From: Anthoceros angustus
Taxonomy: Eukaryota > Plantae > Anthocerotophyta
Assembly (NCBI GenBank): GCA_010909165.1
Contig: MU008164.1
Span: forward strand, 1,674,001-1,738,000
Reading direction: 5' to 3'
Length of the DNA stretch: 64,000 nt
Shown here: in pieces, positions 25,947 through 63,399 of the stretch
Numbering within the stretch: the first letter of the stretch is position 1
How the letters are laid out: each line of letters starts with the position of its first letter
Position numbers and translations under genes: made by a program
Notes under the pieces: generated by a model
The model's input: only the letters and a program-made list of their open reading frames with translations
What the model was told of the DNA's origin: nothing
Databases searched by the model: none

Positions 25947-26464
25947 CCCTCACATTTTGTCGGTAGAGGAAGTGCTGGGCTCCTTACACTCCTGCTCCTG
26001 GAGGCTTTGTTTGCCAGGGGTTCACCCCTTACAGTGGGGTGAGCGGGAGCTCCTAGTAGAATCCCTGTACACACAGGCATCATATATTTACGTCGACATG
26101 CCTGCCTCTATTGGCCAATATTCCTGTTGGAATCTTGAAGCACGACTTCCACCAATAGCTGCAGCTGGAGAGTGCCGGCCATTCACTGCATCTGCAAAAT
26201 AGAAGGAAAGTGGTGAGTGCTAATTCTGTGCTGGTCATGTTCTCAACCAGAAAAACTTCAAACCTTTTGCAGGAAACGATTAGCAGCCTTCTGGACACTT
26301 TCCTTCTGGACACTTTCGGTACTTCTCTCCGGTCTGAGGTTGTACCCATTCAACTCATCTGCGATCTCGCGCTGGAGGCTACACACGGAGGAAGCCAGCG
26401 CGCCCAGGTAAACTGGATACGTGCTTGAATACACACACTTGACAGAGTTGAACATGGACAATTG

Positions 26465-31685: not shown

Positions 31686-31848
31686 GATTGACTCCAAGTG
31701 TACAGGAGCAGACGGTGTGCACGTACGTGGAGGGAGCCTCTATGTGCAATAGAGGAACATGGTGAAATATTCTTGCTATCAGGAAGCGCCGATGAGGTCA
31801 GAATCAGCTTGTGGGGATACTAGCCCTTGCAAGAGAAGTGGACGCGAG
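31686..31848 (+). pseudogene. ELP2: ELP2 5' fragment interrupted by the Gypsy insertion (continues 54438-54510)
   Basis: GADGV..VEGA..CNR, LLSG...KW.RG|CELG; flanks join to a sequence homologous to 15682-15740. Confidence 0.7.
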
Positions 31849-32059
31849 TGTCACGGATAAGGTTTGATAGCGCTTAGTCTTCCGCAATTAGAGGCTGGAT
31901 AATCCGCTGTTTGCTGAAATCACGGCTAGGCTACCACCACAATATGTGGCATGTACTACGCAAGCCATACAAGCCCGGCTCCCTTACTAGTAGACAGTCT
32001 CTCTTGGTACAAGTGTACTCCCCTACTTGCTCCCTGTTTGCGAAGTCCGGCTCATGACA
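31849..32059 (+). repeat. 5' LTR (211 bp); duplicated copy at 36034-36237
   Basis: TG...CA ends; matches 54223-54437. Confidence 0.92.
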
Positions 32060-32061
32060 AC

Positions 32062-32073
32062 TGGTATCAGAGC
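32062..32073 (+). promoter_or_regulatory. Primer-binding site for initiator tRNA-Met
   Basis: TGGTATCAGAGC 2 nt after the LTR. Confidence 0.9.
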
Positions 32074-32160
32074 CCGGTCGATCGGTGCAATCGATCATGG
32101 CCTTGGGCTTAGGGTAGGAATGTTCTAACGCGTTTATTGTGTGTCATTAGAAGGTCCGCC

Positions 32161-34034
32161 ATGGGAGAAGCTGGTCTCGACCCTACCCGGCTAGCTCGAA
32201 TGCTTGCCGAAGCTCACCATGAGCTAAGGCAGTCCAAGATGCGCTGTGCGGAGAGAGATGATGCACTGTGCGGAGAGAGATGCCCGTGTAGCTCAGTTGG
32301 AGGCTGCGGTTGTGCAGCTGCGCGCCAGTGCGATGGTGAGGTGCATACTGCGGCAACTCAGCGAGCCTGAGGACAACGATTGGGTCGAAGATCTCCAAGC
32401 CTGATAATTTTGAAGGCAAGGGGGACCCGGTGGAGGTTGAACTCTGGATCCATCAAGTAGAGACGTATGTTCAGCTAAGCAAGACTGAGCCGGGGCAAGA
32501 GATATAGACGGCAGCTACATACTTGAAGGGGGCGGCTCAGTTGTGGTGGGTGCAGTTGCTTCGGTCGATTTCGCAAGGAGCGGCAGTAGCGCCTCGGAGC
32601 CTCGACGAGTTCTTACAGCTGATCCATGTGCAATTTGTACCCTTGGAAGCAAGACAAGTTGCTCGAGAGAAGCTAGCTCGATTGACACAGCAGACAACAG
32701 TTGCAGCATACACTCGCGAGTTTTGCATGATCAATCATGAGCCTTCCCGGCATCACGGACGAAGAGAAACTAGACAAGTATTCTCGAGGTTTGAGACATG
32801 CCATTCGTAAGGACGTTGTTCTAAGGCGGTGTCACACATTCGAGGAAGCAGTTCAGATTGCGGAGTCCGCTGATGCTTTGTACTACGAATTTAGAGGTTG
32901 GTATAAGCCACGAAATTCCGGGGGCTTGGGATCTGGAGATGGACCAGCCCCTATGGAACTTGGGGAAGCACAAGCATTTTCAGGTCAGTGTTATACTTGT
33001 AATGGGTGGGGTCATCGTGCCAGAGATTGTCCGCAATGATTAGCTCGAGGCCAAGGTGGTCGGGGACGGGGACGACTGCAAGCTGCTGGAGCACGAGTTC
33101 CTCCTGCTGCTCGGCAGTTCAACGAGGTGCAAAGGGTTGAAGGTGCGGGAAACGAGCCTACCCATCAGTCTTAGGGGAACGTGCTGGGCTAGGGCAGCCT
33201 CCTGGTGATACTCCTGTGGTGAGTACCCACCGAAGCCCACGAACACGAGAGTTTGTTCACTTTGCAGGGACAGGTAAACAGTCAGCATTGTCGCATTTTG
33301 CTTGACTGTGGCGCTAACACCAATTTTATGGCCAGGACCTTTGCCCATCGGTGGGGATTGGATACGGTCAAGGTTGTGGAGCAGTGCACCTGGCAGACGG
33401 GCGTGTGCAACATCGGGCGACATTGAGTCGTGTGGTTAATTTACGGTTAGGAGCTCATTGTGAGCAGGTTTGTTTTACCATTACAGACTTAGGGAATGGT
33501 CATGACCTCATTTTAGGGATGCCGTGGCTCGAGAATCGGGAGCCCGCCATAACTTGGTGTGGGAAGGAGCTCACTCTCGTAGTCCGTGGTCGACGTCTAG
33601 TTGTCCGGGGTGGACGGCTTCAGAAGCCCGAGAGTCAGGTCCAACAAGTCTCTGCTGTACAGATGGTTCGTGATATGAGATGCCAAAATGTGCCCTCCTT
33701 TTTGTGTGTTATTAAGGAGCGACTTTGTCCAACTCGACCCGATCAGTTACAGGCACCTGAGCATGATAAGCCCTTGCAGGCGATACTGACTGAGTTTAAT
33801 GATGTTCTGGTAGACAGTTTGCCACCAGGATTACCCCCATCTCGTGATGTTGATCACCGTATTGAATTTTTGCCAGGTACTCGTAAGCCCCCATATCGTC
33901 CTGTGTACCGGATGTCCCCACTAGAAAATGAGGAGTTGTCTCGCTAGGTTGAGGAGTTGCTAGAGAAGGGCCATATACGACCGTCTACTTCCCCCTACGG
34001 AGCACCTATTCTGTTCTCGCGAAAGAAAAACGGT
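32161..34034 (+). pseudogene. Gypsy gag (CCHC knuckle), protease and RT N-terminus; degraded second copy ~36330-38032
   Basis: [69 protein letters not shown]. Confidence 0.9.
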
Positions 34035-37000
34035 AAGCAGTGGCGGGGGAGCAGACGGAGGCGTCACGGCCGAGAACGGTCGAGGCCGTCGGTGAGGCGT
34101 TCCGTGCACCCGGCAGCGTTCGTCCCTCGGCATAAGGGAGCGGCCGAGGCTAGGGCCGAGACGCGTGCGCAACTCGACTGCAGAGCGAGGTGATAGCCGA
34201 GATCTGTGCGCATTTTAAGAATTGTTGCCTTGTCCAACCAGGTTAGAAGTCTTTTTTCTCTCTCTTTTGGAGATTTCACTTTCGCACTTCAGAGTTTTCA
34301 CTTTCACGTGCATTTTCACTTCCGCATTTTAGAGTTTTCACTTTCACGAGATTATGTTCGTCAGGTTTTACGTTTCATCTTTTCTAACTATCTTCTACTG
34401 GTGTTGAAGGGGTGTACACCGGCGATTTTGGATGCCTCTTGAGTAATATTTCTTTCTTTGTTCATTATACGGTCCGGATAGAAAGTTTATCATTTGAAAA
34501 TCTCGTCTAAACGAGAATATTTCTGCAGGCAATGGTAAGTGTAAGACATCGTACATATCAAATCTAGCCACTGTAAATATAATATACTAACCTCAAACAG
34601 TGCAAACAACTCCTTTTGATTCTTCGATAACTACAAACAATGAAAAGCGGTTAATATTTTACCTCCATTTCAAGTCACAGTAGATCCTATTCGGTAAATA
34701 CCTTTCTGACTAATGTTAAGCAATGGCTGTGAAGATTTTCCACACTGCGGAAATGTGATTGAACGTTCTAGAAAGAGACACGAACGTTAGAATTTGCATA
34801 TTTAGTAAATACCAATATTATATTTTCCTTGTTTATCTGAGAAAATGTTCTGAACCAACCTTTTGAATGTTTTTCGTAGTTTCTGGATCTTCCATGAGAA
34901 TCAACAAGTCATGTTTTTAGCTCCTTATTTTCAATGGCTACTGATATTTCTACATTATCAAAACACAAAATATTCATTAATACTACATAAACTGATTCAA
35001 ATAATCTATTATAAACAACATAAACCAAAAACACTTACTTTTCTGGATCTCCATGTACTGCTCTAGTGTTGGTGTAGACCCATCTTCATTGCAGATTGGC
35101 TGCGCTGGATCTTTGAGACTATGTTCCCAAATGGGAACATATCTATTTTTGAAATCTTGGAATACTTGTGGATACTGAAAGTTATCCATCCATTTTCCAA
35201 AGCCAACAAATTCCTTTGACGGTCCAACGTTGGTGCATTATCTTTTGACTCGTCTTTTTTCCTCTTTTTGTCCTTTGGAAAAATAGTAATTAGTAAGTCA
35301 AATACTAGTTACAAATATACTAAATTAATTACAAATATACAATAGCAATTACCTGATGAGAGATGGCTGTGTTGTTGATTTTATCATCCATTGCTTCTAC
35401 CTTTTCCTTAATTTCCTTAGCTGCAGCTACTTGTTCAGCAGCACTCTGTAAACAAATACATTCTAATGTAAACAAATACATATAATACAAAATGTTTGTT
35501 GTTTACCTCCAAAATTGACTGAATTGAGATTTGATGTCCATTGAACCTCCGGACGAGTCATTGTTTCCAACAATTTTTGCGAGTGCAGATGCCTGCCCTC
35601 TTGCAAGCACCAGTGCATCCACAGGCCTTGAAAGGCAAGCAAAGTAACCTCGGTAGGCTAGCTAAACTAGCCTAGGCGCTCCTACTCACTTATGCACACA
35701 CATCTAGCGGCTACCTCTTCACAGAGCCCTTTCACGCGTGCGTACCCATGAGCTGTCTGGACGTCCATGCAGGCACAACACAGGGCGCCGATAATGAAGG
35801 CAGGATGACACGGAGCAGAACCCGTAGCTAGGCCTTCACAATGTGATATGCCAACAACGGAAAGCGTGAAGGGATTGACTCCAAGTGTACAGGAGCAGAC
35901 GGTGTGCACGTGTGGAGGGAGCCTCTATGTGCAATAGAGGAACATGGTGAAATATTCTTGCTATCAGGAAGCGCCGATGAGGTCAGAATCAGCTTGTGGG
36001 GATACTAGCCCTTGCAAGAGAAGTGGACGCGAGTGTCACGGATAAGGTTTGATAGCGCTTAGTCTTCCGCAATTAGAGGCTGGATAATCCGCTGTTTGCT
36101 GAAATCACGGCTAGGCTACCACCACAATATGTGGCATGTACTACGCAAACCATACAAGCCCGGCTCCCTTACTAGTGATGTCTCTCTTGGTACAAGTGTA
36201 CTCCCCTACTTGCTCCTTTGCAGTCCGGCTCATGACAAGCGGTATCGAGCCCGGTCGATCGATTGGCCTTGGGCTTAGGGTAGGAATGTTCTAACGCGTT
36301 TATTGTGTGTCATTAGAAGGTCCGCCATGGAGAAGCTGGTCTCGACCCTACCCGGCTAGCTCGAATGAATGCTTGAAGCTAAGGCGGTCAAGATCTTGTT
36401 GTCGGAGAGAGATGATACCTTTGTCGGAGAGAGATGCCCGTGTAGCTCGGTTGGAGGCTGCGGTTGTGCAGGCTGCAGCAGCCAGTGCAGTGGCTGATGC
36501 CGGCCGGCTCAGCGAGCCTGAGGACAACGATTGGGTCGAAGATCTCCAAGCACGATAATTTTGAAGGCAAGGGGACCCGGTGGAGGTTGAACTGGATCCA
36601 TCAAGTAGAGGCGTATGTTCAGCTAAGCAAGGCGGGGCAAGAGATATGGCGGCCTTGAAGGCGGCTCGGTTGTGGTGGGCGGTTTCTTGATCGGGAGGAT
36701 GGCGCCTCGGAGCCTCGGCGAGTTCTTCTGACTGATCCATGTGCAATTTGTACCCTTGGAAGCAAGACAAGTTGCTCGAGAAGCTAGCTCGATTGACCGG
36801 ACAACGATTGCAGCATACACTCGCGAGTTTTGCATGATCAATCATGAGCCTTCCGGCATCACGCGGACGAAGAGAAACTAGACAAGTATTCGAGGTTTGA
36901 GACATGCCATTCGTAAGGCGTTGTTCTAGGCGGTGTCACACATTCGAGCGATTGATTGAGTCGTGATGCTTTGTACTCAATTAGAGGTTGGTATAAGCCA

Positions 37001-40000
37001 CGAAATTCCGGGGCTTGGGATCGGAGATGGACCACCCCTATGGAACTTGGGAAGCACAAGCATTTTGGTCGAGTGTTATACTTGTAATGGGTGGGGTCAT
37101 CGTGCGAGATTGTCCGCAATGATTAGCTCGAGGCCAAGGTGGTTTGGGGACGGGACGATCGCAAGCCGCTGGAGCACGAGTTCTCCCCGCCGCTCAACGA
37201 GGCAAAGGGTTGAAGGTGAACGAGCCCACCCATCACCTTAGGGGAACGTGGCCGGGCTAGGGCAGCCTCGGTGATACTCCTGGTGAGTACCCACCGCCAC
37301 GAACACGAGAGTTTGTTCACTTTGCGGGGGAGTAAGCGATCGCATTGTCGCATTTTGCTTGACCGTGGCGCTAACACCAATTTTATGGCTGTGACCTTTG
37401 CCCATCGGTGGGGATTGATACGGTCAAGGTTGTGGAGCGGGCACCGGCAGACGCGTGTAACATCAAGGCGACATTGAGTCGTGTGGTTAATTTACTGCTA
37501 GGAGCTCATTGTGAGCGGGTTTGTTTTACCATTACGGACTTAGGGAATGGTCATGACCTCATTTTAGGGATGCCGTGGCTCGAGAATCGGAGCCCATAAC
37601 TTGGTGTGGGAAGGAGCTCACCGTAGTCCGTGGTCGACGCTCAACCGGGTGGACGGCTAAGCCCGAGAGTCAGTCCAACAAGTCTCACTGCATGATGGTT
37701 CGTGATATGAGATGCCAAAATGTGCCTCCTTTTGTGTGTTATTAAGGAGCGACTTTGTCCAACTCGACATCGACCACAGCACGAGCATGATAAGCCCTTG
37801 CAGCGATATTGACCGAAGTTTAATGATGTTCGCAGATTGCCACGTGATTACCCCATCTCGTGATGTTGATCACCGTATTGAATTTTGCCAGTACTGTAAG
37901 CCCCCATATCGCCCCTGCACCGATGTCCCCACTAGAAAATGAGGAGTTGTCTCGCTAGGTTGAGGAGTTGCTAGAGAAGGGCCATACATCGTCTACTTCC
38001 TCACGAGCACCTATTCGCTCGAAAGAAAACGGTGAAGCCAGATAGAACGGACGCCGGAGGTCCGAGAACGGTCGAGGCCGTGCCGAGACCTTCTAGGCCG
38101 GCACCCGACGCCGCTCGCTGCCTCGGCATAAGGGAGCGGCTAGGGCCGAGACGCTGGCGCAACTCGGCGCGAGCGAGGTGATAGCAGATCATGCATTTAA
38201 ATTGTTGCCTTGTCCAACGGTTAGAAGTCTTTTTCTCTCTCTTTGGAGATTTCACTTCGCATTTTAGAGTTTTCACTTTCACGCATTTCACTTCCGCATT
38301 TTAGAGTTTTCACTTTCACGAGATTATGTTCGTCAGGTTTTACGTTTCATCTTTTCTAACTATCTTCTACTGGTGTTGAAGGGGTGTACACCGGCGATTT
38401 TGGATCTGCTCTGTCTTCAGAGTAATATTTCTTCCTCTGCTCATTATACGGTCCGGATAGAAAGTTTATCATTTCGAAAATCTCGTCTAAACGAGAATAT
38501 TTCTGCAGGCAATGGTAAGTGTAAGACATCGTACATATCAAATCTAACAGAATATAATATACTAACCTCAAACAGTGCAAACAACTCCTTTTGATTCTTC
38601 GATAACTACAAACAATAAAAAGCGGTTAATATTTTACCTGCATTTCAAGTCGCAGTAGATCCTGTTCGATAAATACCTTTCTGACTAATGTTAAGCAATG
38701 GCTATGAAGATTTCCCACACTGCGGAAATGTGATTGAACGTTCTAGAAAGAGACACTAACGTTAGAATTTGCATATTTAGTGCTGTGTGTTCTGGAAAAT
38801 ACCAATATTAGTATTTTCCTTGTTTACATACAGAAAATGTTACAGTGAACCAACCTTTTGAATGTTTTTCGTAGTTTCTGGATCTTCCATGAGAATCAAC
38901 AAGTCTGTAGTTTTTAGCTCCTTATTTTCAATGGCTACTGATATTTCTACATTATCAAAACACAAAATATTCATTAATACTACATAAACTGATTCAAATA
39001 ATCTATTATAAACAACATAAACCAAAAACACTTACTTTTGGATCTCCATGTCTTTGCTCTAGTGTTGGTGTAGACCCATCTTCATTGCAGATTGGCTGCG
39101 ATGGATCTTTGAGACTATGTTCCCAAATGGGAACATATCTATTTTAAAATCTTGGAAGACTTGTGGATACCGAAGTTATCCATCCATTTTCCAAAGTCAA
39201 CAAATTCCTTTTGATGGTCCATACGTTGGTGCATTATCTTGACTCGTCTTTTTTCCTCTTTTTGTCCTTTGGAAAAATAGTAATTAGTAAGTCAAATACT
39301 AGTTACAAATATACTAAATTAATTACAAATATACAATAGCAATTACCTGATGAGAGATGGCCGTGTTGTTGATTTATCATCCATTGCTTCTATTTTCCTT
39401 AATTTCCTTAGTCAGCTACTTGTTCAAGAAAGACTGTAAACAAATACATTCTAATGTAAACAAATACATATAATACAAAATGTTTGTTGTTTACCTCCAA
39501 AATTGACTGAATTGAGATCGATGTCCATTGAACCTCCGGACCAGAGTCATTGTTTCCAACTCTAATTGAGCTGTTGTTCGGAGATTCTTCTTAATATCCT
39601 GTAACCATATACAACCATTGTAAGTTGCTGATACCTATATTTTCGTTCTATAGTTCTAGAGAAAGTTGCGGAACCAAGTCTTTACCTTTTTAATTTTTTC
39701 CAATTGGGCAGGCACCTGGCAAAGGAGCTGCAAGTCCTTTTTGTCCATTGATGTGAACATAGTGTGCTCCGTGAGTACTGTAACAAATATATCCAATTAG
39801 AGATGTTGACAGGAAATTCAATTCAGATAATTGCGATGTACTACCTTTCTCAACTATCTTTCGTATTTCAATGAGAGGGATTTCGAACTTCAGCCTGTCA
39901 TCATATCCTGGATCCCCATGGGTGGGAACATGATTGTTCGATCGCCAGCTGTTAAGGTTTGTTGGCTCTTTACTATTGTGGTCGCTCTGGAGAAACAATC

Positions 40001-42085
40001 ATTTTAGCCATGGATTTATCAACCTAAAAATGGATTTGGCGGCTGTAGGCAGAAATGATCATTACCTTCTTGGATGTCGACCATTTCATCGTTGCTCTCA
40101 TTCTCGGATGCCATTCTGAAATAAAAGCATCGGTCAGGTCAACGTACACAAACATTGCTCAAGCTTCAACTTTTGGAAACATCTACGGAGTGCCTGCAGC
40201 ATGCTCGATGCTGCTGCTAGAGCATGCTATGGGCCACTGCAAAAGCCACCGCATGTGGGACTTCGTACGGGAGGGACGCATGGTATCACCACGGGATGCT
40301 ATCACCATGTGGTGATATCCTGTGGTGATATCACCATAGGATAGCATGCTTTCACCACTGGCGTTGCGTTGCTCTTTGCGTGCGCGAGTTCTTTGTGCGT
40401 CTTTGCGGCTTGCGGTGTTCATGCCGCATACCTTCAGCTGCTGTGTTGGATCATGCGTTCATGCCCGTACCTTCAGATTTTGTACTGCATGCCGTGTGCA
40501 TTCCACATTGTCACTTCTATAGAGCGTTTAAAAACAAATTGATACTTACCAACCTTTCAGTATAACCGTTCAGATTTCCTACACAAGGAACGGAAAATGT
40601 TAAGCGTGAGCACTTGATGTGTTCTACTGTTGGTACGAGGCGGGCGTGAACGCCTTACTGGAAGATGCTTCTTGCTGCCTACACACGGAGTAAGAATTAG
40701 TTTTTGTCAGGAACTCTGATCACAATATTGATTAACATGTGACGTTGCTGTCTGACACGTTACTGACTCTAACTAAATTTAGAACCTGAGGACTGATATT
40801 AATCTGGAGCTTTTGATACTGGAAGCTTACCTTGAAGACAAATGAAAATGGAAATCGATGGGCGTAGGCGTATGCAAGCTCAACATTTAAAGCGCTGTTA
40901 AACGGCATGCGGCTTGTTGCGATTCTGTTGCGTAAGCGACCTACAGATATGTATTAGAAACGGGTAAGGTTTTAAGACAACTGTATGCTAAAGGAAAGGC
41001 TAAAGTCAGTCGCTTGCGACTGCAGCCGCTGAAGGTTGAGACTGCAGGCGTTAGCTGCAGTCCCAAGCATGCGTGCTTTGCCGCACGTCGTCACGGAGTC
41101 ACTCTTGCGCCACGTGAGTCAACAATTGCAAGTGCATGCTCCTGCAACTACCATGCCCGCGACTACAGTTGCAGAGGCTTGCTTCTGTAACTACTGCATG
41201 CCTGATACAAGCTTCTAAGAGCAGTTGAAGGAGGGACTTACGCTTGTGGAGGTTCTTGTGGTGGACCACAGACACCACTTGTTTGTAGCACGTGTATGCA
41301 GTGTCGTGACAGGTGCAAGGCAACGATTAAGCCGATGTCATAGCGTCAAGCAGATCAAAGACAAGACTATCGAAGACCTGCTAGGTTGCGGCTGATCAGC
41401 AGTAGCCCGACTTTGAAAAAGGAAAGAACCAAATGGTAATAAGGTCAGTTTGTCTACCTGTAGGCTTGTTAATGTTCCTGAGGACTTCTTGTAGCGCTGG
41501 ACCCTGAAGGGGCTTTTGCGTGGGCTCGAGACTTCTCTGACAAATCACTTGATAAGAAGGCAGTTCTCAATAGCAAACTCACGATGATTATAGCCTATGC
41601 ACTAGCAATGGCTGGAAGCAAGAGCCCACGAGACAGCTGGGTGTGGGCGAAAGGACTTCAACGAAAATATAGAGGAGAACCGACACGACGTTAGTGAGCT
41701 TGACGTCGTACCTACGAAGGACGCCAAAGCGAGACTTCTTGTTGTCTTATGGGCGGTGGCAGGAGCTAAGCGTAAGCTGGATGCCACCGGTGTGAGCTGC
41801 AAAAAGAGACGTGATCAGATGGTTTGCAGCAGAAGATCAGAGAGAGCAAATTGGTGTACCCACCTAGGGACTGGAACCAAGAGACTAGGCGACTGAAGAA
41901 AGAAGCCCATCGGGCTTGATGCGTGTGGTGGGCGTCGAGATGAAGGAAAGTGGAGCCGATTGCGTCGTCAGACCTTCCCGAGGACACCAAACTTGGAGCA
42001 AGAGGTCACTCGCGAAGCGATCGTAACCGGATGGCGCCGACCGCCACATCCTCCTGACGCACTGGCGGCGTGTTGGGCGTGAGCG

Positions 42086-42398
42086 AAACCCTATGTGTCT
42101 TTGTTTAAATCTTGGCCGAAAGTTCTAGATGGTTCGACGGTGGCGTGGCGTGTGGTTGACGGTAGGTTCGTTCGCCCATCGGGGTTCGGAGATTAGGTTT
42201 GGTGCGGTTAGGCTAGGTTTGGAATCAAGAACCTAGGTTTGGTTGAACATGGCGGCGGCGGCAGCGAATGGCGAACCTACGTAGGTTTGGAATCCGGCTC
42301 GGAATCTTAGGTTTGGTTAATTCAAATCAGCTTTGGTAGAGAGAGAATGGCGGCGCCGCCAGAGGGAGAAGGTTTAGGGTTTGCTGGCCTATATAAAT
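42086..42398. promoter_or_regulatory. Probable (bidirectional) promoter inside the insertion: telo-boxes at 42086 and 42371, five TAGGTTTGG motifs, TATA box CTATATAAAT at 42389-42398
   Basis: Motifs read directly; function inferred. Confidence 0.5.
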
Positions 42399-42466
42399 GG
42401 CTTCTCCAAAGCGGGAGGTCTTTTTCCCATTCTGTCTTTTCTTGGCCGAGGTGGTCCAGTGTCTGG

Positions 42467-43005
42467 TCCGAAAGCTTAGGCGTTTGTTCAGTCTAGTTTC
42501 GTAGGCCAAGGTCTTTCCTCCTCTGTTTCGAAGGCCAAGGCCCGGTGCCTATTTTTTCGTAGGCCAAGGCCAATGCCTTGTGCATGCTTCCAGGCTTTGC
42601 TCCGAAGGCTTACAAGCTGTCTTGTTCTAGTTTCGCAGGCCAAGGTGATTTCTAGCTTCGCTCCGAAGGCTAAGCTCTTTTTGTAGCCGTCTTTCGAAGG
42701 CCAAGGTGTTCTAGGCTTCTAGGCTAAGGCGTTTGTTCAAGTTTTTGGGCCAAGGTGTCTTTCAGGTCCTTTCGAAAGGCTAAGGCCTTTTCCCAGCCTT
42801 CGTTCGAAAGCCAAGGTCTCTGTAAAGATTGTTTCGAAGGCCAAGGTGTTGCTGGTCTGTACTGGTTCTTTTTCGAAGGCCAAGGGGTTTCCCTGGTCCG
42901 AAGGTCAAGGTGTCCTTGCCCTAAGGTTTAGGTTGTTGCTTAGTCCGAAGGCCAAGGTTGTTTGGCACCGAAGGCTGAGGTTTCTGTTCGCCTAAAGGTT
43001 AAGGC
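42467..43005 (+). repeat. Array of ~18-20 copies of a TTCGAAGGCCAAGGT-like motif at ~30-bp spacing with variable spacers
   Basis: Core C positions 42500, 42529, 42558, 42634, 42664, 42695, 42774, 42805, 42835, 42874, 42899, 42946, 42969. Confidence 0.85.
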
Positions 43006-44139
43006 CCTCTGCCTTATTTGAAGTCGCTGTCCATTTGCGCTTACGTTGTTTTGTGTTGCCCCGATGTCTATTGTTTCTATCTTTTGTTGTTTTGTGCGGT
43101 TTTGGTGTTGTGTTGTTGCTACGCCGGTAGTGTTCTGGCGCTCCGGTGTATGTTCTTTGCGGTTGTTTTGCCTAGTCTGTGTGGTTTTAGTGTTGTGTCT
43201 ACCGCTTGCTCACCGGTGGCTTTTTGTATCGCTGTTCTCGCTCCGCTCATTGATGTTGTTCTTTTCGCGTTTCTAAATTATAGGGAATGACTCTGCTAGG
43301 ATGTTATCCGGTTTGTGTTCGCCGATAGCTCTTTGTTGCTAGCTGATTTCGTTCTTTGTAGTTTCTCTTGTTGATCTTGTTTTCTTTGTTGGCCTTGTTG
43401 TCGATGGTGTCTGCCGTTTTGTAAGCGACCAGCGATGCTTGTCTTTCTGGAGATTTCCAGCTTCTGTTGTTGCATCTAGGCTAAGGTTTGTTCATGTCTG
43501 TTCCATGTGTGATACTTGTGTTCTTTTTTCACCTTCTCTAATCGGTCGTTTCTGTTTGTTTGTTGGAAGTGACCTCTTTATCTGTTCGCTTGTTGTCGTC
43601 TGGTTCCATGGCTTGGTATCAGTTTGCATCTCTGCTTGTTTTCTTGTCTCTGTCGCGTTATCTGATCTGACTTTATTTAGGTTTCATTTACTGTGTGTTC
43701 TTGTTTTTGTTGCTGTGACGTTTTGATATGTGTTTGTCGTTTGAAGCAGTTTAAGGTTCTGTATAAGTTTTGGTTCTAGCTGATTTCGTTCTTTGTACTT
43801 TCTGTGTTGATCTTGTTTCTTTGTTGCTAGTTGATTTCTCGTTCTTTGTCGTTTTTGAAATCGACCAGCAGATCGCTTTTAGAGTCGCTTCGTGGTTGCT
43901 TCTAGGCTAAGTTTTGTTTAGGTCTGTTCCATGTGCGATACTTTCACCTTCTGTGTTTTTTTTTCACCTTCTGTAAACGCTGCTATAACTTGTTTGTTTG
44001 TTTGTTGGAAGTGACCTCTTTATCTATTCGCTTAATGCCGTTTGGTTCCATGGCTTGGTGTCATTTTGCTTCGCTGCCTGTTTTCTTGTCTCTGTCGCGT
44101 TGTCTGATCTGACTTCGGTATTTAGGTTTCAGTTCTGTA

Positions 44140-44310
44140 TGTCTTTGTGTTGTTTTGTTTGTTTGTTTGTTTGTTTTTGTTTTTGTTTTGTTGTGGTTTT
44201 GTTTTGTGTTGTTTTGTTTGTTTGTTTGTTTTTGTTCTTGTTTGTTTTTGTTGTGGTTTTGTTTTTGTTGTGGTTTTGTTTTGTTTTGTTTTGTTTGTTT
44301 TTGTTCTTTG
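44140..44310. repeat. (GTTTT/GTTT)n low-complexity tract
   Basis: Direct reading. Confidence 0.85.
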
Positions 44311-46653
44311 CGTGCTTCTAAATCATAGGAATGACTGCTAGGATGTTGGTGTTCCTTGTCCACTCTAACTTTTTGTGGCTTGCGGATGGCACCTAAAAGG
44401 AAACCCAGGGCCTTGGACGGGAAAGAAGCAAGGGTCCCACAGCGAAGTCATGGCTAAGCCGTACACTAGGCAGCGTGTCAAGTCGGCCGTTCTCCACCTG
44501 CACTGCGGGATGATGGTAAAGTTGATGGTGTCTTGGTGCAGTGAAGGAACATATTTAGTTCCAAAAAGGCATTCCTAAACGCCAAGGCACTTCTCATCCA
44601 AGAAGGATGCTCGGCGTGCGGTGAGTTTGTGCGAAGAGGAGAAGGGTGGACACTCGACACTGTGGCATTGGTTGAAGGTCCTCTTGCGAGATTACTAACT
44701 ATGTCCCGATGTCGAGAGAGGGTCCGGTTTGTTCGATAGCTCTTTGTTGCTAGCTGATTTCTCGTTGCTGTAGCTTTCTCTTTGTTGATCTTGTTTGCTG
44801 ACGATGGATGGTGTCTGCCGTTTTGTAAGCGACCAGCGATGCTTATCTTTGAGATTTCACATTGTTGCATCTAGTTGAAGGTTGTGTATAAGTTTTGTTT
44901 GTTCCATGTGTGATACTTGTGTTCTTTTTCACCTTCTCTAATCGTCGTTCTTGTTTGTTTGTTGGAAGTGACCTCTTTATCTCGCTTGTTGTCGTTCCAT
45001 GGCTTGGTATCATTTGCATCTCTTGTTTTCTTGTCTCTGCGTTACTCGATGACTTTTATTTAGGTTTCATTCTGTGTGTTCTTGTTTTTGTTCTTTGTGA
45101 CGTTTGATATGTGTTTTGTCGTTTAAGCTTTAAGGTTGTATAAGTTTTGGTTCTAGCTGATTTCTCGTTCTTTGTACTTTCTCTTGTTGATCTTGTTTTC
45201 TTGTCTCTGTCGCTTGTTGTCGTTTGTTTGTTTGTTTTTTTTGAAATCGACCATGATCACTTAAATCTTAGAGTTGACCCTGGTTACTTCTAGGCTAAGT
45301 TTTGTTTAGGTCTGTATGCGATTCTTTCACCTTCTGTTTTCACCTTCATATGCTATAACTTGTTTGTTTGTTTTGTTTGTTGAAGTGACTTTTATCTATT
45401 CGCTTGATGCCGTTTGGTTCCATGGCTTGGTGTTTTGCTTGCTGCCTTTCTTGTCTCATGCGTTGTCATCGACCCGTATTTAGGTTTCAGTTCTGTATGT
45501 CTTTGTGTTGTTTTGTTGCTGTGACGTTTTAATATGTGTTTTGTCGTTCTAAGCAATTGAAGGTTGTGTATAAGTTTTTTCCTGGACAGGGTTCGCTTTC
45601 CTCGTGTGTTCTTACTCTCTCCTCGCTGTTTTTGATGCAGTCATGTTTTCGGTCTAAGTGGCGGACACATTTCGGGACCTTGTTTGGTACGTCACCGAAC
45701 GTCTTTTGTGTGAACTCGTTTTATCTTTACGATGCGCTTTTGAAAAATGCTGTCAGTTATATTCTTTTCGATCTTGCATTGTTTTCATAATGTTGAGCAA
45801 GTTCTTATTGTCTTATGTTCTTGTGTTTGACGAAGTAATTTCAATATTTTTGGTAAGGCGAGGGTTGGTAAGCAATTAGCAGCGTTTACATTTGTCTTGT
45901 TTACATTTATCACTGCATCACAACGACTTTCATGGTTACTATCGTTTGTTTGTTTTTAAGCACATAAGCGTGCTTTCTCGTTCTTATTGGTTTTCTTTTG
46001 GTGCAGACAAGCTTTGTGTTGGGCGGTTGAGAAATTTGTCCATGGTGTAACCCTTGATCTGGTATGTCAACTTTACGTTTAGACCTTATGATTCCTTTGT
46101 CATATGTTTGGTCATATGCCCTTGTCGTGTCAAGTTTGCTTTGGTACCACTTTTAAGTTATCTAATCCTTCAAATTGTGTGTGTAGGCATTGTTGTTCAT
46201 CGTGTGAAGGGTTGGCCTGCCAACGTTCTGACTCTGGTCTGTCTGTGAATCAGGATAACCTTTCCTTGCCTGATTAGTCACGATTGAATCTCCTAGTATC
46301 GTTATGCATGTTGTTTTGTACCTAACATTTTTTTTTTGCTGTTTTTTTTTATTATTGGCAAAAGGGTCTAATTACAGGAAGTATGTGGGTACTTTTGGGA
46401 AAGGAGTTATATGTTCTCACTAACATAAAGTGGAGGATCTCTAAATTTAACAATGTGTAGATTCAATGAATGTTCTGCCATATCCCCACACCTCCCTTCG
46501 TCTTGAATTGTTTTATAATCATCATTAGACCCTTGAGGAAGTTCTTATTTGGAAGTTCAACACCACGTAAGTGTGTTTTTGTTGGTTTTGTTTGTCAAGT
46601 TCTCTTTAGGATGTTGGTGTTCCTTGTCCACTCTAACTTTTTGTGGCTTGCGG

Positions 46654-49600
46654 ATGGCACCTAAAAGGAAACCCAGGGCCTTGGACGGGAAAGAAGCAAG
46701 GGTCCCACAGCGAAGTCATGGCTAAGCCGTACACTAGACAGCGTGTCAAGTCGGCCGTTCTCCACCTGCACTGCGGGATGATGGTAAAGTTGATGGTGTC
46801 TTGGTGCAGTGAAGGAACATATTTAGTTCCAAAAAGGCATTCCTAAACCGCCAAGGCACTTCTCATCCAAGAAGGATGCTCGGCGTGCGGTGAGTTTTGT
46901 GCGAAGAGGAGAAGGGTGGACACTCGACTGTGGCATTGGTTGAAGGTCCTCTTGCGAGATTACTAACTATGTCCCGATGTCGAGAGAGGGTCCGGTTTGT
47001 AGGAGAATGATTTCTTGATAAGCAGCGATCCCATGGTTGTGACCGCCAAAGCTCTAGAGTCTAGAAATTTGTGTGGTGTGGTTGAGCAGATGCTTCTGGT
47101 GGCGATTTCCATACTGTTTTGGTTCCGACCACAGGTCATCCACGATCAAGAAGTGCTTGATATGTTTGAGAGGCTAAAGTGTCTTTGGTCCGAAGATGAC
47201 TTTGCCATGGGTATGGAGGAAATTGATGATGAAGTAAATTTTAGGGGCGGGGTTTGATCCGTCGGTCCCGAGGCTGAATGATGCTTTGAGTGGTGGGAGG
47301 ATAGGTCAAAGGCAAAATAAGCGGTGTCGAAGTCGTCGGGGCCTTTATGAAAGTGAGTGGGGTGGGGATGGGAGCTGTTGAGGATATTCCTCACAAGGAT
47401 CTAAATCTTATTCGATATCCTTTTTCCATCAAGTTCGAATTTGAAGGACAACAGATTTTCTCGAAGCGTAAGTAGTGATGTTCTTACTTGTTGATTTTGA
47501 TAGTTCGACTTTCACATGGTGATTGATCTTCACTTGCGGTGATGTCTTTCTTCGTGGTTTTAACGAATTTTAACAAGGAAGTGCATCACAGACCAAAGCG
47601 GCTTGGTTACGATGTTCGATGATCAACATGTTTCATGGAATTTTCCATGGGTCCCAGGCAGCGCTGGTTGCGTCCATGAAAATCAGCAAGGACCTTGGGA
47701 TTGTGTCATGTCGAAAGGAGGTGAAGTTGATTTCTGATGATGATTAGCGACGGATTCTTTCGCACAGAGATCATCAATGCTCATTTGGGCGGGGGGCTCA
47801 AAAAAGGTATTATTGTTGGTTTTTTGGGGTGTACATTGATTGTTAATTTATGGTCTTAAACCTGGAGCCCTTATGCCTATATTGTTTGCAGGTGTGCGTA
47901 TTTTTGCATGACGAGGTTTGGAGTTCGAGGTGGTGAAGAGTTACATAACCTGCTCATTAGGGACTTCTCATTTTCATCAGATTCAGGCGGACCTTTCGTT
48001 CAGTATGTTTTGGTTGATTTGTTTTATTGTCACTCTTTGATGTTGTTTTGATGTTTTGATGTCTTTGTATTGAGCTCGTCTTCATTTGCGGTATGAAGCG
48101 GCTTTCAAAAATTACAAAGTGGACATGAAGAATTACAGTGAGCATTTAGTCAAAGGTCAAGATCTACGAAAAGGACGTGATTAAAACTTTTAAAGTATTG
48201 ATCACTCTCCCAAGTGGTGCATGCGACAAGAATCATCAATTCGAGGTTTCTCTTCAATTCAACCATTGATAACCCAAGATCAAATGTAAGTTTGTGGTTG
48301 ATTGGGCTTGAGTTTTGTGGTTTGAATTTTCTAACTGTATGTTTTTTGGCTAGGCTTGGTATGCAAAACTTCGTGTATCGAAAGGAATGCTCTCAAGGTT
48401 TATGAAGACTATGGCTGAAGCAGCTGGGCTTGTTGGCTATTACACCAATAAGAGCTGCCGTGTAACGATGATTACGTCGCGATGGCTCGGTGCCTTCGAT
48501 CTTTGGGAGAAGTGTGGGGCCATAAAGCGGATCTTTGGATTTTCAAGGTAATATGTGTGAAAGCTTGTGACATTTGAATCCTTTGTATGCTCCTTCCTGA
48601 CGTTCTGATGTTTTGCAGATATGACCATTCTGGTCAAGCAAAAGCGCAAAACAAGTTTTGTTCTGAGCGATCCTATCAGGAGCTTTTGAACGAAGAACTT
48701 AATCGGATGCAGGATGATTTAAGGGGTGTTCTTCCATCAACAGTTCTGAATGTGACTCCTGAAATAGTATTTTCGAGTCAGCCTGAAGATCAGCGCCCCT
48801 TGCAAGTGCAACATATTAACAATGTAAGTCTCTAAGATTTGTTGCAAGTATATAGATTTGTCAAAATCGTGTCGACTTGTTTTTTGTCTCTTCCTCCTGG
48901 CCACTCCTTATTCATCATGAAAGCGGACCCACGAACAATGTCGAATGCGAGTTTTTACACCATGTGGTCCACTTGTGTCTTGAGTTGGTATTGTCAAGTT
49001 CCTTTGTTGTAGCCATGTTGGATGATTTTTAATCATCTTGGTTTTTGTTATTCTTGGCGGTGGGAGGCTGGTGTTTTGGTTGCAAACATACCTCCAGCGG
49101 TGGCCAAGGCATCCGGATGGATAGCAAGAGCAGTGTTTAGTGAAATTCCATATGTTGACAAGGTTGAGTCTTTGGTTGTTTGTTTTATTGTTCTTTGTGT
49201 TTCTTGATGTTTTGATGTTTTGATGTCTTTGTATTGAGCTCGTCTTCATTTGCGGTATGAAGCGGCAAAAATTACAAAGTGGACATGAAGAATTACAGTG
49301 AGCATTTCAAAAGGTCAAGATCTACGAAAAGGACGTGATTAAAACTTTTAAAATTGTTATCACTCTCCCAAGTGGTCCGACAAGAATCAATCATTCGGGG
49401 TTTCTCTTCAATTCAACCATTGATAACCCAAGATCAAATGTAAGTTTTTGTTATTGGGCTTGAGTTTTGTGGTTTTGTATTTACTAAGCTTGTTTTTGGC
49501 TAGGCTTGGTATGCAAAACTTCGTGTTTCAAAAGGAATGTTGTCAAGGTTTATGAAGACCATGGTGAAGCTGGGCTTGTTGGCTATTACACCAATAAGAG

Positions 49601-51127
49601 CCGTATGTGATGATTACGTTTGACGATGGCTCGGTGCCTTCGATCTTTGGGAGAAGTGTGGCCATAAAGCGGATCTTTGGATTTTCAAGGTAATATGTGA
49701 AAGCTTGTGACATTTGAGTCCTTTGTATGCTCCTTCACGTTCGATGTTTTGCGATATGACCATTACGGTCAAGCAAAAGCAGGCGCAAAGTTCTTTGCTG
49801 GTGAGCGGCGATCTATCGAGAGCTTTGAGCGAAGAACTCAATCGGATGCGGGATGATTTAAGGGTGTTCTTCCATCAAGCGATTGAATGTGACTCCACGA
49901 AATAGTATTTTCGAGTCACCAAGATCGCGCCCTTGCAAGTGCAACATATTAACAATGTAAGTGTTTGAGATTTGTTGCAAGTATATAGGGACTTTGTCAA
50001 AATCGTGTCGACTTGTTTGTTGGGTCTTACTCTGTGGCCACTCCTTATTCATCATGAAAGCGGACCACGAACAATGTTGGAGAACTGAGTTTTCTGCACC
50101 ATGTGGTCCACTTGTGTCTGAAGTTCTGGTATTGTCAAGTTCCTTTGTTGTGGCCATGTTGGATGATCTGTTTAATCATCTTGGTTTTGTTATTCTTGGT
50201 GGGAGTGTGGTGTTTTGGTTGCAAACATACCTCCGCGGTGGCCAAGGCATCCGGATGGATAGAGACCAACAGTGTTCTAGTGAAATTCCATATGTTGACA
50301 AGGTTGATTCTTTGTCATTTGTTTTGTTGTTGTTTTCATTTGTTTTGGAGTTTCCTAATTGTGTGCTTCTTGGCAGATTTCGAATCCATCGACTAGTGTA
50401 AGCGACCTTCATCCCTCATTTCAACATTGATATCGACTACGAGGAAGTCGATGCAGTGGCCCCTCTGTTGGAGGGCATTGTGCAGATTGAGTGTGATCAG
50501 TCATCTGAAGTTAACCAGGATAGAAATGTGGCTCTAGTAGCACCTCTGGATATCGTATTGCGACATGGAAATGGAAGTGGCTTTGAGCGTGACGGCCGAG
50601 ATCTGAACGGGGTTGGAGTATGATATTGAAGCGAAATGGAGTTTCAACGGCAAAAGGATTTGGAGGCACTTATAGAGAGGCAGTGCGGTTGAATTACAGT
50701 CTCTAAGCAAGAGAAAGCCCTTGAGATTTAGAGGCGGAGAAATGTGGAGAGGAGACAAGAGCACATTAAGCATCAAGAGAAACTCAAGCAGCAACAAAAA
50801 AAGCAGCAAGAGGTCCGAAGATTGCAGTGGGAAAGACAACATGAGCAGAAGAATGTGCCTCGAGATATGCCCACTGCTATCTGCGAAAATCCGTCAGGAT
50901 TGGTAAGTTTTGTTATGCTCTTTAAATCAGTTCTAGTAGATTGAAAATTAATGGTTGTGTTTTATTAGGTTGTGACCTTGCAGGAAGACGGACAATTTGG
51001 GCGAAGTCCTCAACTTCATCAATTGGTTGCCAATTATGATAATGCTGGCCAAGTGCCAATCAAGCCAAGTGGTCGTGAAAATTACATTTTCAATCTGTAT
51101 AATTGTACAGTTAATTTCCCAAAATAA
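46654..51127 (+). pseudogene. Multi-exon tyrosine recombinase, Crypton/DUF3504-type, disrupted; putative first exon also copied at 44386; internal 1164-bp duplication
   Basis: SFFHQVR (~47415), ALVASMK...RRILSHRDHQ (47658-47776), YFCMTRFGVRGGEELHNL (Arg 47926), SKNYK region (~48100), AWYAK...MKTMAEAAGLVGYYTNKSCRVT (48354-48467), GHK (48518), intron, RYDHS (Tyr 48620), C-terminal FNLYNCTVNFPK* (51125-51127). Confidence 0.8.
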
Positions 51128-51670
51128 GGTGAGTATCATTGCTTAAGTATTTGTTATGATCATTCCCAGTGTTTTCTAGTATCAGCCTAATTACTGTTTG
51201 GGTGCTAATTTTCGTTTTGTTTGTAGGTTTCATTGTTGTTGAAGCAGAGTTCAATCTATTCTGGTATTTACTCTTCATTACTTGAATTTGTATTTCATGC
51301 CATTCTGGATATACAGGAAACTCTGCAAAGAAAAGGTTTCTTTGTTGGTTTTTTGTATATCCTGGATCCGCATGAATATTATTTAACAGAAAATGTTTTT
51401 GTCAGATTAGCGATTTTGGTGGGATTTCTAGAATGAGCTTCTACTAGATGCACCTGGTATTCACTTGGTCGTCATTTTTTTCTACTCTAGTGCTCTGTTT
51501 TCTACCTTGATGGTAGATCATTTTCACCCCACTTGGCATATTTTCTACTATATTGTAATGAATTTTACTATATTGGGTAAAACAATGACCAAAAGGTCAA
51601 TTCTCTCTCTAAAATTCACCTCCACTACCGAAAAAATCAACTGGGCGTCGAGGCCCCGGACGAGGCAGCG

Positions 51671-54200
51671 ACTTTACGTATGTGCATTGACTACAGGCCT
51701 TAATTCATTGACTAAGCGGAACACTTTTCCTCTACCTCGTATTGATGAGCTTTTGGAGGGATTGGCTGGTGCTCGGTACTTCACCAAACCAGATCTAGCA
51801 AGTGGATATCATCAGTTCGTATTGCTGCGGGGATGAGGAGAAACCGCATTTAATGCGATGCGGCCACTATGAGTGGCTGGTTATGTCGTTCGGGATGACA
51901 AATGCTTGACATCCTTAGACTCTTATGAATAATATATTTCATGGCATGATCAATCGAGGGCTGCTTGTTTATCTCGATGATATTCTCATCTATGGAGCTA
52001 CGTGAGGAGCATGACCAGCAGCTTAAGTGAGCGTTGCGGCTCATCATCTCTATGTCCAAGCTCCAAGTGTGAATTCTTGCAAGAACGCTTGGAGTACTTA
52101 GGGCACATTATTGATGCTGAAGGTATCCGTAGACCCGCTAAGATTGGTCATTAGGGATGGCGATTCCTCGGCAAGTACACGATGTGCAGAGCTTCCTCGG
52201 TCTTGCATCATATTACCGTAAGTTTGTTTCACGGTTTGCTCATGTGGCTGCCCCCCTCACCCAGCTGCTTCAGCACGGCCAGGCTTGGACTTGGGGTGCT
52301 GCTCAAGATAATGCTTTTCATGCTATCCAGACTGCTTTGGTGACTGCCCCTGTGTTGGCATACCCAAATCCGGCCTTCCCTTTTATTGTTACAACTGATG
52401 CCTCCAACCTTGCCATCGGTGCGGTCCTTCAACAAGACCAAGGCCAAGGCCGCCAGCCGATTGCTTACTTCTCGCGAAAGTTGAAGGGTGCCGAGTTGAA
52501 TTGGACAACCAGTGAAAAAGAGACTTTAGCTTAGGTCTTGGCTTTAAAGACATGGCGCTGCTGCAAGTCGGGAGATTATCGGGACTCTCATACAGGATGC
52601 CGATGCCCACTCTGCTTTGCAAGCCCTTCGAGCTGGTTCCCGTGACTGGGCTGAGCGGGATGGTCTTCTTTGGTATCGTCACCGGCTCTTCATCCCTCAG
52701 GTTCCCCATATCCGTCGGGCTTTGATTTCTGAAGCCCACGACGTTCCATCTGCAGGTCATCAAGGTATAAGTCGGACTACTTCCACTCTCAGTCGGCTCT
52801 AATTTTGGCCTCAGCTCAACCAGGACGTTTGAGATTATGTCCTCCTCTGTAACTCATGCCAGCGCAACAAAGCTTATCACCAACGCCCGCTGCTCCAACC
52901 CTTGCTGTCTCTTTATTGCCTTGGGAGCAAGTCACACTTGACTTTATAACGGATTGCCTCGCCTCACCGGCTCTTCATCCTCGGGTTCCCCATATCCGTC
53001 GGGCTTTGATTTAAAAGTGACGTTCCATCTGCAGTCATCAAGGTATAAGTCGGACTACTTCCACTCTCGATCGGCTCTATTTTTTGGCCTCGGCTCAACG
53101 GACGTTTGAGATTATGTCCTCCTCAGAACTCCTGCCGGCGCAACAAAGCTTATCACCAACGCCTGCCTGCTCCAACCCTGTCTCTTTATTGCCTTGGGAG
53201 CAAGTCACACTTGACTTTATAACGGATTGCCTCGCCTTGCTGGCTTTGATGCATTGCTGGTCTTCACGGATAAGCTTACCCGTCAAGTGCTCCTTGCCCC
53301 ACTCGAGACATGCTCGAGCAAGCTGACTTATTTTTGAAAGTAGTTTATCGTGCCCATAGCCTCCTCGCTCTCTTGTGGCGACCGTGATTCAGTTTACTTC
53401 CGCTTCGGCAAGCGGTTCACCGTCTTGGCACCAAGCTCGTATGTCTCGCCTTTCATCCTCGGTGATGGTGGCGCTAGCTAATCAAGTTTTAGAGGATATT
53501 CTCCGTGCTTATGCGGCGTGCACCAAGCTCGGTGGCGGACTTTCTCCACCTCGTTGAGTTTGCCTACAACAATGCCCCTAATGCCTCAACCCGAGTTACT
53601 CCATTCTTGTTCAACAAAGGTTTTCACCCTCGCCGTTGCTTCCTTCCTTGCCTCTCGCTTGCCGTCCTACAGATTTCCTCACCCAACGTGTCCAGATTCA
53701 GGAGTAGGCTCGTCAGTTCGCCCATGAAGCCCAAAACCGCCAAGCCCAGTCTGCCAATCATCGTCGTCGTCCTCAAGAATTTGCAGTTGGTACCTATGTC
53801 TGCCCGAAATTTGTCCCTTCCTGGGATTCGTAAGATTTCCCCTCATTTTGTTGGTCCTTACCATATCCTCCGTCGCATTGGCCCTGTGGCCTATGAGCTT
53901 GCCCTTCCCTCTGAATCTCGCATTCACCCTATCTTTCATGTTTCCTTGCTCAAACTTTTTAACGGCTCCCCACCTTCTGTCCCAGCCCCGATACATACCT
54001 GTGACGGTCCCGCATATGAAGTGAAGAGCCTTCTCCGCCACCGATGTGTTCGCCATCGGTATGAATTTTTAGTGCTGTGGAAAGGTTTCCCCATTAGCGA
54101 TGCCTCTTGGGAACCCCTTGCCAACCTTTCTCGTTCTCCTGACCTTCTTAGTGTCTATGCTCGTTATCATCACCTACATCTTCCCGGCTTCGAGGACGAA
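51671..54200 (+). pseudogene. Gypsy RT (remainder), RNase H, integrase (HHCC + core) and chromodomain; ~290-bp internal duplication at ~52680-53230
   Basis: TLRMCIDY, FPLPRIDELL, YLDDILIY, TDASNLAIGAVLQQ, PIAYFSRKL, AHD...GH...C..CQRNK, VTLDFIT, YEV..LL...YEFLVLWKGFP..DASWEP. Confidence 0.9.
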
Positions 54201-54222
54201 GCCTCTTCCACCCGGGGTGAGT

Positions 54223-54437
54223 TGTCACGGATAAAGTTTGATAGCGCTTAGTCTTCCGCAATTAGAGGCAGGATAATCCGCTGTTTGCTGTGATCACGGC
54301 GAGGCTACCACCATAATATGTGGCATGTACTATGAAAGCCCCGTGCATAAAAGCCCGGCTCCCTTACTAGTAGACAGTCTCTCTTGGTACAAGTGTACTC
54401 TCCTACTTGCTCCCTGTTTGCAGTCCGGCTCATGACA
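54223..54437 (+). repeat. 3' LTR (215 bp), preceded by TCGAGGACGAA and a short purine-rich tract, followed by TSD GCGAG
   Basis: Match to 5' LTR with roughly 10 substitutions and two indels by eye. Confidence 0.92.
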
Positions 54438-63000: not shown

Positions 63001-63399
63001 TGGCGAAGAACTGCGGCTCAGTCTCAGAAGTTCCTAGTTTCAGCAGGAAGGACAGCCATGACGAGCGCGCCGAGGCCCAAAACAAGGCCCCAAGTGCGTC
63101 CCTTAGGCAGGTAACGGTCGCTTGTCAGGGCGCCCGGCCTCGAACGTTCTCGGCCGTGGCACCCCCTTCAAGCGACGGTGACCTAATACGACCACTCGGG
63201 CGACCAGCCAGCTCAGTCCAATAAAGTTCCCAGCCCTCCTCATCCCTGGCGGCTTCAGTCTGAGAAGTTCCTAGTTCCGGCGGGAATGACAGAATCACAG
63301 GCATTTCAAACCCTTGTGTGACTGGGATTTCTACGGCAGAAGTGGCCAGCCAATACCTAGAACCGTTATTCTTTTATTAGCGAATATATTCGTATACGC

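Follow-up and report, generated by a model that had tools for sequence, protein, structure and literature searches.

What kind of DNA can enter a coding sequence at a codon boundary and leave no base gained or lost there? This question is raised by a stretch of 64,000 nucleotides from Anthoceros angustus (assembly GCA_010909165.1, contig MU008164.1, positions 1,674,001 to 1,738,000 of the forward strand; hereafter the window), in which a block of 17,636 bp (34035-51670) lies inside the reverse transcriptase (RT) gene of a Ty3/Gypsy retrotransposon. A sequence-only reading of the window had proposed that this block is a candidate Crypton-like DNA transposon carrying a tyrosine recombinase. Our analysis indicates that 34035-51670 is probably one dead copy of a land-plant Crypton-like DNA transposon that was later inflated by duplications.

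The insertion site in the Gypsy reverse transcriptase gene

The insert splits the RT gene exactly between two codons, at 34034|51671. The left flank ends with ...CGAAAGAAAAACGGT at 34034, and the right flank restarts with ACTTTACGTATGTGC at 51671. Joined at the nucleotide level, the Gypsy sequence reads ...AAAAACGGT|ACTTTACG... (flanks ...AACGGT and ACTTTA...), and the reading frame across the junction is FSRKKNG | TLRMCIDYRP. Employing the 198-aa protease/RT open reading frame (ORF) to the left of the junction as the query in a protein-database search, we found two independent Gypsy protease-RT proteins, P0005 and P0006. In a tblastn comparison with P0005, residue 226 (the G of KKKDG) ended at 34034, and residue 227 onward mapped from 51671; a small frameshift was present in the right Gypsy half about 30 nt past the junction. 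Residues 226 and 227 are contiguous across the gap, therefore no residue was lost or duplicated. One base (A) is assignable to either the insert or the flank, and the overlap between element and target is at most 1 nt. The 64-kb window contains no second RT copy of the outer Gypsy family and hence offers no empty-site comparison at the nucleotide level.

The outer Gypsy element spans 31849-54437 and would measure 4,953 bp without the insert. It possesses a pair of TG...CA long terminal repeats (LTRs; 197 matches, 12 mismatches and 8 gap columns, 94% identical), a primer-binding site, a 5-bp target-site duplication (TSD) on both sides, and protease, RT, RNase H and integrase in the order typical of Ty3/Gypsy (Table 1). 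The sequence-only reading had placed the junctions at 34034 and 51671, described the join as free of loss and duplication, considered the outer Gypsy to be a single insertion and regarded the intervening DNA as a later nested insertion. Sequence and reading frame showed both positions to be right; the tblastn comparison upheld the clean join, with the 1-nt ambiguity as its only reservation; and the matching LTRs, the primer-binding site and the GCGAG repeats established the single outer element. The later nested insertion was likewise upheld, as a conservative entry into the Gypsy RT gene with neither a TSD nor a loss of target sequence. The host element is compact (LTRs of 211-216 bp) and yet full of stops and frameshifts, despite the 94% identity of its LTRs.

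The insert lacks the usual marks of a transposon. Beyond the one shared base (A), no direct repeat flanks it, and there is no TSD. No inverted k-mers are common to its two ends, and no terminal inverted repeats (TIRs) were found; the ends fold no better than shuffled sequence (z = 0.3 and -1.1); self-comparison revealed no nested LTR or TIR pairs within the insert; and the resemblance of the target site to the insert ends was not above that of shuffles. These k-mer, flank and hairpin checks bore out the previous statement that TIRs, a TSD and Helitron ends are absent. The ends do share direct repeats. An exact 9-mer, GTCGAGGCC, is located at 34079-34087 (45 nt from the left end) and at 51647-51655 (24 nt from the right end); elsewhere in the window it is found only in a duplicate at 38071, and all three are in the same orientation. 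The terminal pair extends to an imperfect 21-nt match (16/21). In addition, the termini themselves form an imperfect direct repeat, AAGCAGTG...AGGCAGCG (6/8), which is not matched in the target.

We scanned the insert, with duplicates removed, for Pfam domains in 121 stop-free pieces of at least 55 aa from both strands (cut-off E<=0.01). No RT, RNase H, DDE, Rep or helicase family was matched in these pieces, and the sole match at this cut-off was a marginal lectin (E=0.0035). The GYxxK motif of Replitrons was absent from every frame of the insert, and HUH-like strings occurred only in non-coding-looking frames.

The tyrosine-recombinase gene and the left half of the insert

In the right part of the insert, we found GT..AG-bounded exons that together carry the boxes of a tyrosine recombinase (Table 1), and homology searches were made exon by exon. 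A search of 1.84 billion protein representatives with the box II exon (48354-48548) as the sole query gave a match to P0001 (E=3.4e-7). P0001 and P0002 bear TNHSIRATSVT...GH motifs and show sub-threshold Pfam matches to DUF3504 / Phage_integrase (E ~7e-6); in the BLASTP alignment, TNKSCRVT of box II was positioned opposite TNHSIRAT. The box I exon (47860-48048) fell on DUF3504 clusters in a protein atlas (score 0.96, 187 shared features), and the other atlas families listed for it are all of the recombinase type (DUF3435, NDC10_II, Phage_integrase and ResT-TelK_cat). The candidate catalytic set consists of R47926, K48107, K48450 (in place of His), R48459, H48521 and Y48620. A homologous-protein search with the box II exon gave no candidates; its length window excludes full-length relatives, so that this result carries little weight. 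The box II match and the atlas placement of box I support the assignment of a predicted intron-containing tyrosine-recombinase gene of the Crypton/DUF3504 type to the insert, as the sequence-only reading had claimed. The retention of introns in an integrated copy argues against an RNA intermediate.

The middle of the insert contains a TATA box and a telobox that may constitute a promoter, followed by an array of short motifs (Table 1). TCGAAGGCCAAGG has 12 matches in the whole window versus 1.5 expected, and 10 of them lie inside 42499-42957; such motif arrays may serve as protein-binding sites. The promoter elements and the motif array reported before are therefore present as sequences, with a putative role in transcription. 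A probable second gene, which had also been claimed, is not demonstrable in this copy. Seven candidate second-gene pieces showed no Pfam match, and the ORF 39693-39998(-) yielded no candidates in the same length-limited search for homologous proteins and no recognition in the protein atlas (value 1161).

Duplications, other copies and the origin of the insert

By self-comparison, we identified three tandem duplications within the block (3,998, 2,267 and 1,165 bp); with these removed, the net length of the insert is 10,206 bp. The previous estimate of about 13.6 kb had rightly left out the first duplicate, which ends at 39560 rather than 39551, and still included the two others. The large size of the element was thus overstated. 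Even so, about 10 kb appears to be above the usual size of described Cryptons. The first duplicate combines 477 bp of DNA from upstream of the Gypsy with the 5' LTR and the 5' half of that element, and continues through the left junction into the initial 1.5 kb of the insert; the 9-nt microhomology at its breakpoints suggests a real microhomology-mediated duplication after the insertion. In the second duplication, block 44339-44732 is 98.7% identical to 46607-47000, and the copy at 44734-47000 doubles the putative first exon of the recombinase gene (ATG at 44386 and 46654).

The second copy of the first duplication (35563-39560) shows about 110 small indel runs with a bias toward deletion (250 versus 57 gap columns), and transitions and transversions between the copies are at a ratio of 2:1. 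The differences are patchy, with up to 300 identical bases between indel clusters; the first 600 nt of the copies are near-identical, and the GC-rich Gypsy coding part shows 10-38 differences per 100 nt. This pattern suggests uneven consensus polishing, not uniform divergence. Sequencing noise may therefore account for part of the frameshifts in the recombinase gene, and frameshifts anywhere in the window should be read with caution.

Related sequences were present in one public run, X1, the only one found to hold any. In this run, 280 contigs aligned to 50400-53400 with 85-99+% identity, and the depth peaked in the 3' non-coding stretch 51208-51510; the evidence for multiple copies is confined to the right 1.3 kb of the insert. 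One diverged X1 contig of 712 nt, in which 213 nt are skipped, links the end of the final recombinase exon to a portion of the 3' region and to the terminal ~26 nt of the insert. In at least one other copy, therefore, the right terminus and the recombinase gene occur together. The match of the same contig apparently continues for 7 nt past 51670, into ACTTTAC, which may be due to chance or may hint at a target preference; its remaining ~288 nt are unlike the host Gypsy. In JGI metagenome contigs, neither an exact 24-mer of the high-copy 3' region nor the box II protein pattern was matched.

The interpretation of the insert as a single unit is based on outer boundaries that are exactly complementary in the Gypsy frame, the lack of any TSD, TIR or LTR boundary inside the insert, the occurrence of GTCGAGGCC close to both ends, and the imperfect direct repeat formed by the termini. 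For the same reasons, we consider it unlikely that the insert is a composite, in which the recombinase element would occupy only ~42.2-51.67 kb and the left part would be another TSD-less element or captured host DNA; with boundaries this exact, the composite must have entered as one piece or been nested without a trace. Such an origin retains a share of the probability because the left 8 kb (34035-35562 plus 39561-42200) has neither copy linkage nor a recognised second gene: the X1 contigs speak for the right 1.3 kb only, and no homology, domain or recognised gene ties this part to the recombinase. The TATA/telobox in mid-insert could also mark the start of a separate unit. On balance, the left 8 kb may well belong to the recombinase unit. 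It is improbable that the DNA was placed by something other than its own recombinase, either as a circle or fragment captured during double-strand-break repair or as an HUH rolling-circle element that happened to carry a recombinase gene. HUH elements likewise insert without TSDs, and the Replitrons among them are abundant in non-seed plants and carry short direct repeats in or close to their termini (PMC10288648); with the ambiguous base assigned accordingly, the minus strand of the insert would even start with TC. However, neither a Rep/helicase domain nor GYxxK was found in the insert; a CTRR end, an A^T site and a terminal hairpin are all missing; and capture by end-joining usually leaves small deletions or filler, not a codon-exact join.

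The lack of a flanking 4-6-bp direct repeat of the Crypton type counts against a Crypton-like transposon, as do several other results: no dyad-symmetric core was found across the reconstructed circle joint or the target; no recombinase exon reached significance in Pfam, where ten exon pieces gave chance matches only; protein searches revealed no plant relatives of the box II exon or of ORF 39693-39998(-); and the left 8 kb, as described above, has no tie to the recombinase gene. Both tandem copies have lost the reading frame between TNKSCR and GHK, the amounts differing (74 and 70 nt), and the copy as assembled cannot make the enzyme. The two insert ends are known together from one locus only, and none of the reads or contigs listed spans either junction. 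The last point would also suit an assembly artefact, in which noisy long reads were misassembled so as to place all or part of the block within the Gypsy, as would the richness of the locus in tandem duplications and the deletion-biased indel runs between identical stretches of the second copy. We regard such an artefact as very unlikely: two chimeric joins 17.6 kb apart would hardly complement each other at one codon boundary of a conserved RT motif, each of the two duplicate copies contains the left junction, and a 9-nt breakpoint microhomology is typical of real events.

If the insert is a Crypton-like transposon, its history may be reconstructed as follows. An element of ~10.2 kb with a DUF3504-type recombinase would have entered the RT-coding sequence of a resident 4.95-kb Gypsy. 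The recombinase would excise or copy the element as a circle with the joint ...GAGGCAGCG|AAGCAGTGG... and would then carry out strand exchange with a target in which no shared core sequence is required, in the manner of the heterology-tolerant recombinases of Tn916/CTnDOT. Integration would occur by conservative breakage and rejoining, with no target base duplicated or removed and an overlap of at most 1 nt. The junction, free of gain, loss and repeats, is consistent with such a conservative tyrosine-recombinase exchange without crossover matching. Afterwards, the three tandem duplications (one with breakpoint microhomology) and frameshifts would have inflated and inactivated the copy. As a speculation to which we give little credence, there may be a land-plant branch of Crypton-like elements whose recombinase, with its His-to-Lys change in box II, integrates without core homology or a flanking repeat and possibly prefers the conserved KKxG|xLRMCIDY-coding site of Gypsy RT genes; if so, the element would be a site-preferring parasite of retrotransposons.

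Within the 3' region of the insert there is a foldback at 51294-51376 (stem ~35 bp, dG -39.9 kcal/mol, z = -7.9). In Rfam, it appeared as a sub-threshold MIR781-like structure on both strands (39 bits versus a gathering score of 88), and the tRNA and Rfam scans detected nothing else. The foldback is bordered by TAT on both sides and is located where run X1 depth over the insert is greatest. It may be a tiny foldback insertion of the miniature inverted-repeat transposable element type or a structured piece of the 3' region.

Further tandem duplications are present nearby, at 27454-28520 versus 28961-30015 (97%), 28565-28971 versus 30633-31041 (99%), 52679-52964 versus 52964-53237 (90%) and 19882-20284. 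They reflect either a local tendency toward microhomology-mediated duplication or a stuttering assembly. Outside the outer Gypsy, colinear direct matches of 75-96% (26186-27902 versus 55848-57842, and 29233-30214 versus 62793-64000) indicate at least one older LTR-type element, or a related pair, enclosing or flanking the whole nest.

Table 1. Features of the host Gypsy element and of the insert, in positions of the window
Feature	Coordinates	Strand	Details
Gypsy TSD, left copy	31844..31848	+	GCGAG
Gypsy 5' LTR	31849..32059	+	TGTCACGG...CATGACA
Gypsy internal 5' half	32060..34034	+	gag, protease, RT N-terminus; ends ...FSRKKNG
Primer-binding site	32062-32073	+	tRNA-iMet, TGGTATCAGAGC; plant-typical
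Insert left terminus	34035..34215	+	Starts AAGCAGTGGCGG; GC-rich block of ~180 nt with GGCCGAG-type motifs
Tandem array near left end	34270..34345	+	GAGTTTTCACTTTC-type units, period ~22 nt, ~3.7 copies
First tandem duplicate	35563..39560	+	Duplicate of 31372-35562; breakpoint microhomology GTTTCCAAC (9 nt)
Insert body	39561..42180		Includes GC-rich 1.3-kb stretch ~40990-42300; putative place for second gene
Promoter-like region (putative)	42194..42400	+	Five TAGGTTTGG at 42194-42316, telobox TTTAGGGTTT at 42373, TATA CTATATAAATGG at 42389
Motif array	42499..42957	+	At least 10 same-strand TCGAAGGCCAAGG copies, mostly ~25-60 nt apart
Repeat units and second tandem duplication	43323..47000	+	T/G-rich units of ~430 nt; 43323-44732 vs 44734-47000
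Tyrosine-recombinase gene (predicted)	46654..51127	+	Intron-split, frame-broken; GT..AG-bounded exons
Recombinase box I exon	47892-48006	+	Reads ...RFGVRGGEELHNLLIRDF...; R at 47926
Recombinase middle exon	~48070-48289	+	Lys of FKN at 48107
Recombinase box II exon	48354-48547	+	Reads ...MKTMAEAAGLVGYYTNKSCRVTMITS...; TNKSCR, Lys (for His) at 48450, Arg at 48459
Recombinase GHK His	48521 (box II exon)	+	Reached after frameshift (...GHKADL...)
Recombinase Tyr exon	48617-48823	+	Begins RYDHS...; Tyr at 48620
Third tandem duplicate	49171..50335	+	Duplicate (87.6%) of 48009-49196; repeats middle, box II and Tyr exons
Recombinase last exon	50969-51127	+	
Insert 3' non-coding terminal region	51128..51670	+	Ends ...GGCGTCGAGGCCCCGGACGAGGCAGCG
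Gypsy internal 3' half	51671..54221	+	RT from TLRMCIDY, RNase H, integrase; many stops and frameshifts
Gypsy 3' LTR and right TSD	54222..54442	+	LTR 54222-54437; TSD GCGAG 54438-54442

Comparison with known systems

Several classes of mobile elements share part of the features of the insert. DIRS, Ngaro and PAT elements also have a tyrosine recombinase, no classical TSD and direct-repeat motifs near their ends; we rejected DIRS/Ngaro, as the insert shows no RT/RNase H or methyltransferase in any frame, no inverted terminal repeats or internal complementary region, and no clear split direct repeats. Replitrons, whose defining enzyme is a Y1 Rep HUH endonuclease bearing the GYxxK motif (PMC10288648), resemble the insert in their TSD-less integration and in the short direct repeats located in or close to their termini, and they reach high copy numbers in non-seed plants. 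This class was rejected because the insert has a tyrosine recombinase instead of Y1 Rep and GYxxK. A Helitron was rejected on account of the ends (AAGCAG...GCAGCG; on the minus strand TC...TGCT, between G and T), the lack of a hairpin and the lack of Rep/helicase. A cut-and-paste transposon was rejected as well, with no TIRs and no DDE family in sight. The rejection of DIRS/Ngaro, Replitrons, Helitrons and cut-and-paste elements holds as far as a decayed copy allows. Starships, like the insert, are DNA elements mobilised by a tyrosine recombinase and able to carry extra genes; they are fungal (Pezizomycotina), tens to hundreds of kb long, and have a DUF3435 captain at the 5' end. The insert was not assigned to them, because its recombinase is nearest to DUF3504 and lies at the 3' end, its net length is 10.2 kb, and no cargo domains were found by Pfam.

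Tn916 and CTnDOT integrate via a circular intermediate without target-site duplication or crossover identity, and they carry coupling sequences of 6-7 bp. Integration of this kind would produce junctions free of gain and loss, like the one observed for the insert. They differ in being bacterial conjugative elements with recombinases of unrelated subfamilies, and coupling sequences would be unrecognisable from one copy.

The closest likeness is to the CryptonA/DUF3504 Cryptons (Kojima & Jurka 2011, PMC3212892) and the Glomhoppers (PMC13465315), in which, as in the insert, a DUF3504-type recombinase is the sole recognisable enzyme. Both lack RT, TIRs and LTRs. The recombinase gene of these Cryptons, like that of the insert, can have introns, and a second gene is optional. 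Such Cryptons are multi-copy, with many copies truncated or broken; for the insert, run X1 shows multiple copies of the right 1.3 kb. The literature searched reports Cryptons from fungi, oomycetes, diatoms and animals; for DUF3504 elements, the reported hosts are animals and Glomeromycota. In the published model, repeats of 4-6 bp flank a Crypton because element and target share them (PMC3212892, PMC13465315). The insert differs from Cryptons in its land-plant host, in having no 4-6-bp flanking repeat and in box II, which reads TNKSCR versus TNHSIR (Lys for His); in contrast to CryptonA, it does not reach Pfam DUF3504 (PF12012) on any single exon. No description of a land-plant Crypton was found in the literature searched, in agreement with the earlier remark, which was aware of no well-characterised example, and as far as this literature shows, tyrosine-recombinase DNA transposons are apparently undescribed in the plant kingdom.

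Cryptons have no TIRs and no long repeats, which makes their boundaries difficult to determine (PMC3212892). At this locus, the empty site is supplied by the conserved RT motif itself, and the two ends of a plant Crypton-like element can be placed with an uncertainty of at most 1 nt. Should the same termini be confirmed in other copies, the locus would provide cis-sequences with which all members of the family, the non-autonomous ones included, could be found, and a search for excised circles and an in vitro test of the H-to-K recombinase would become possible. What the locus adds is an exact insertion site, at which integration took place without duplication or deletion of the target.

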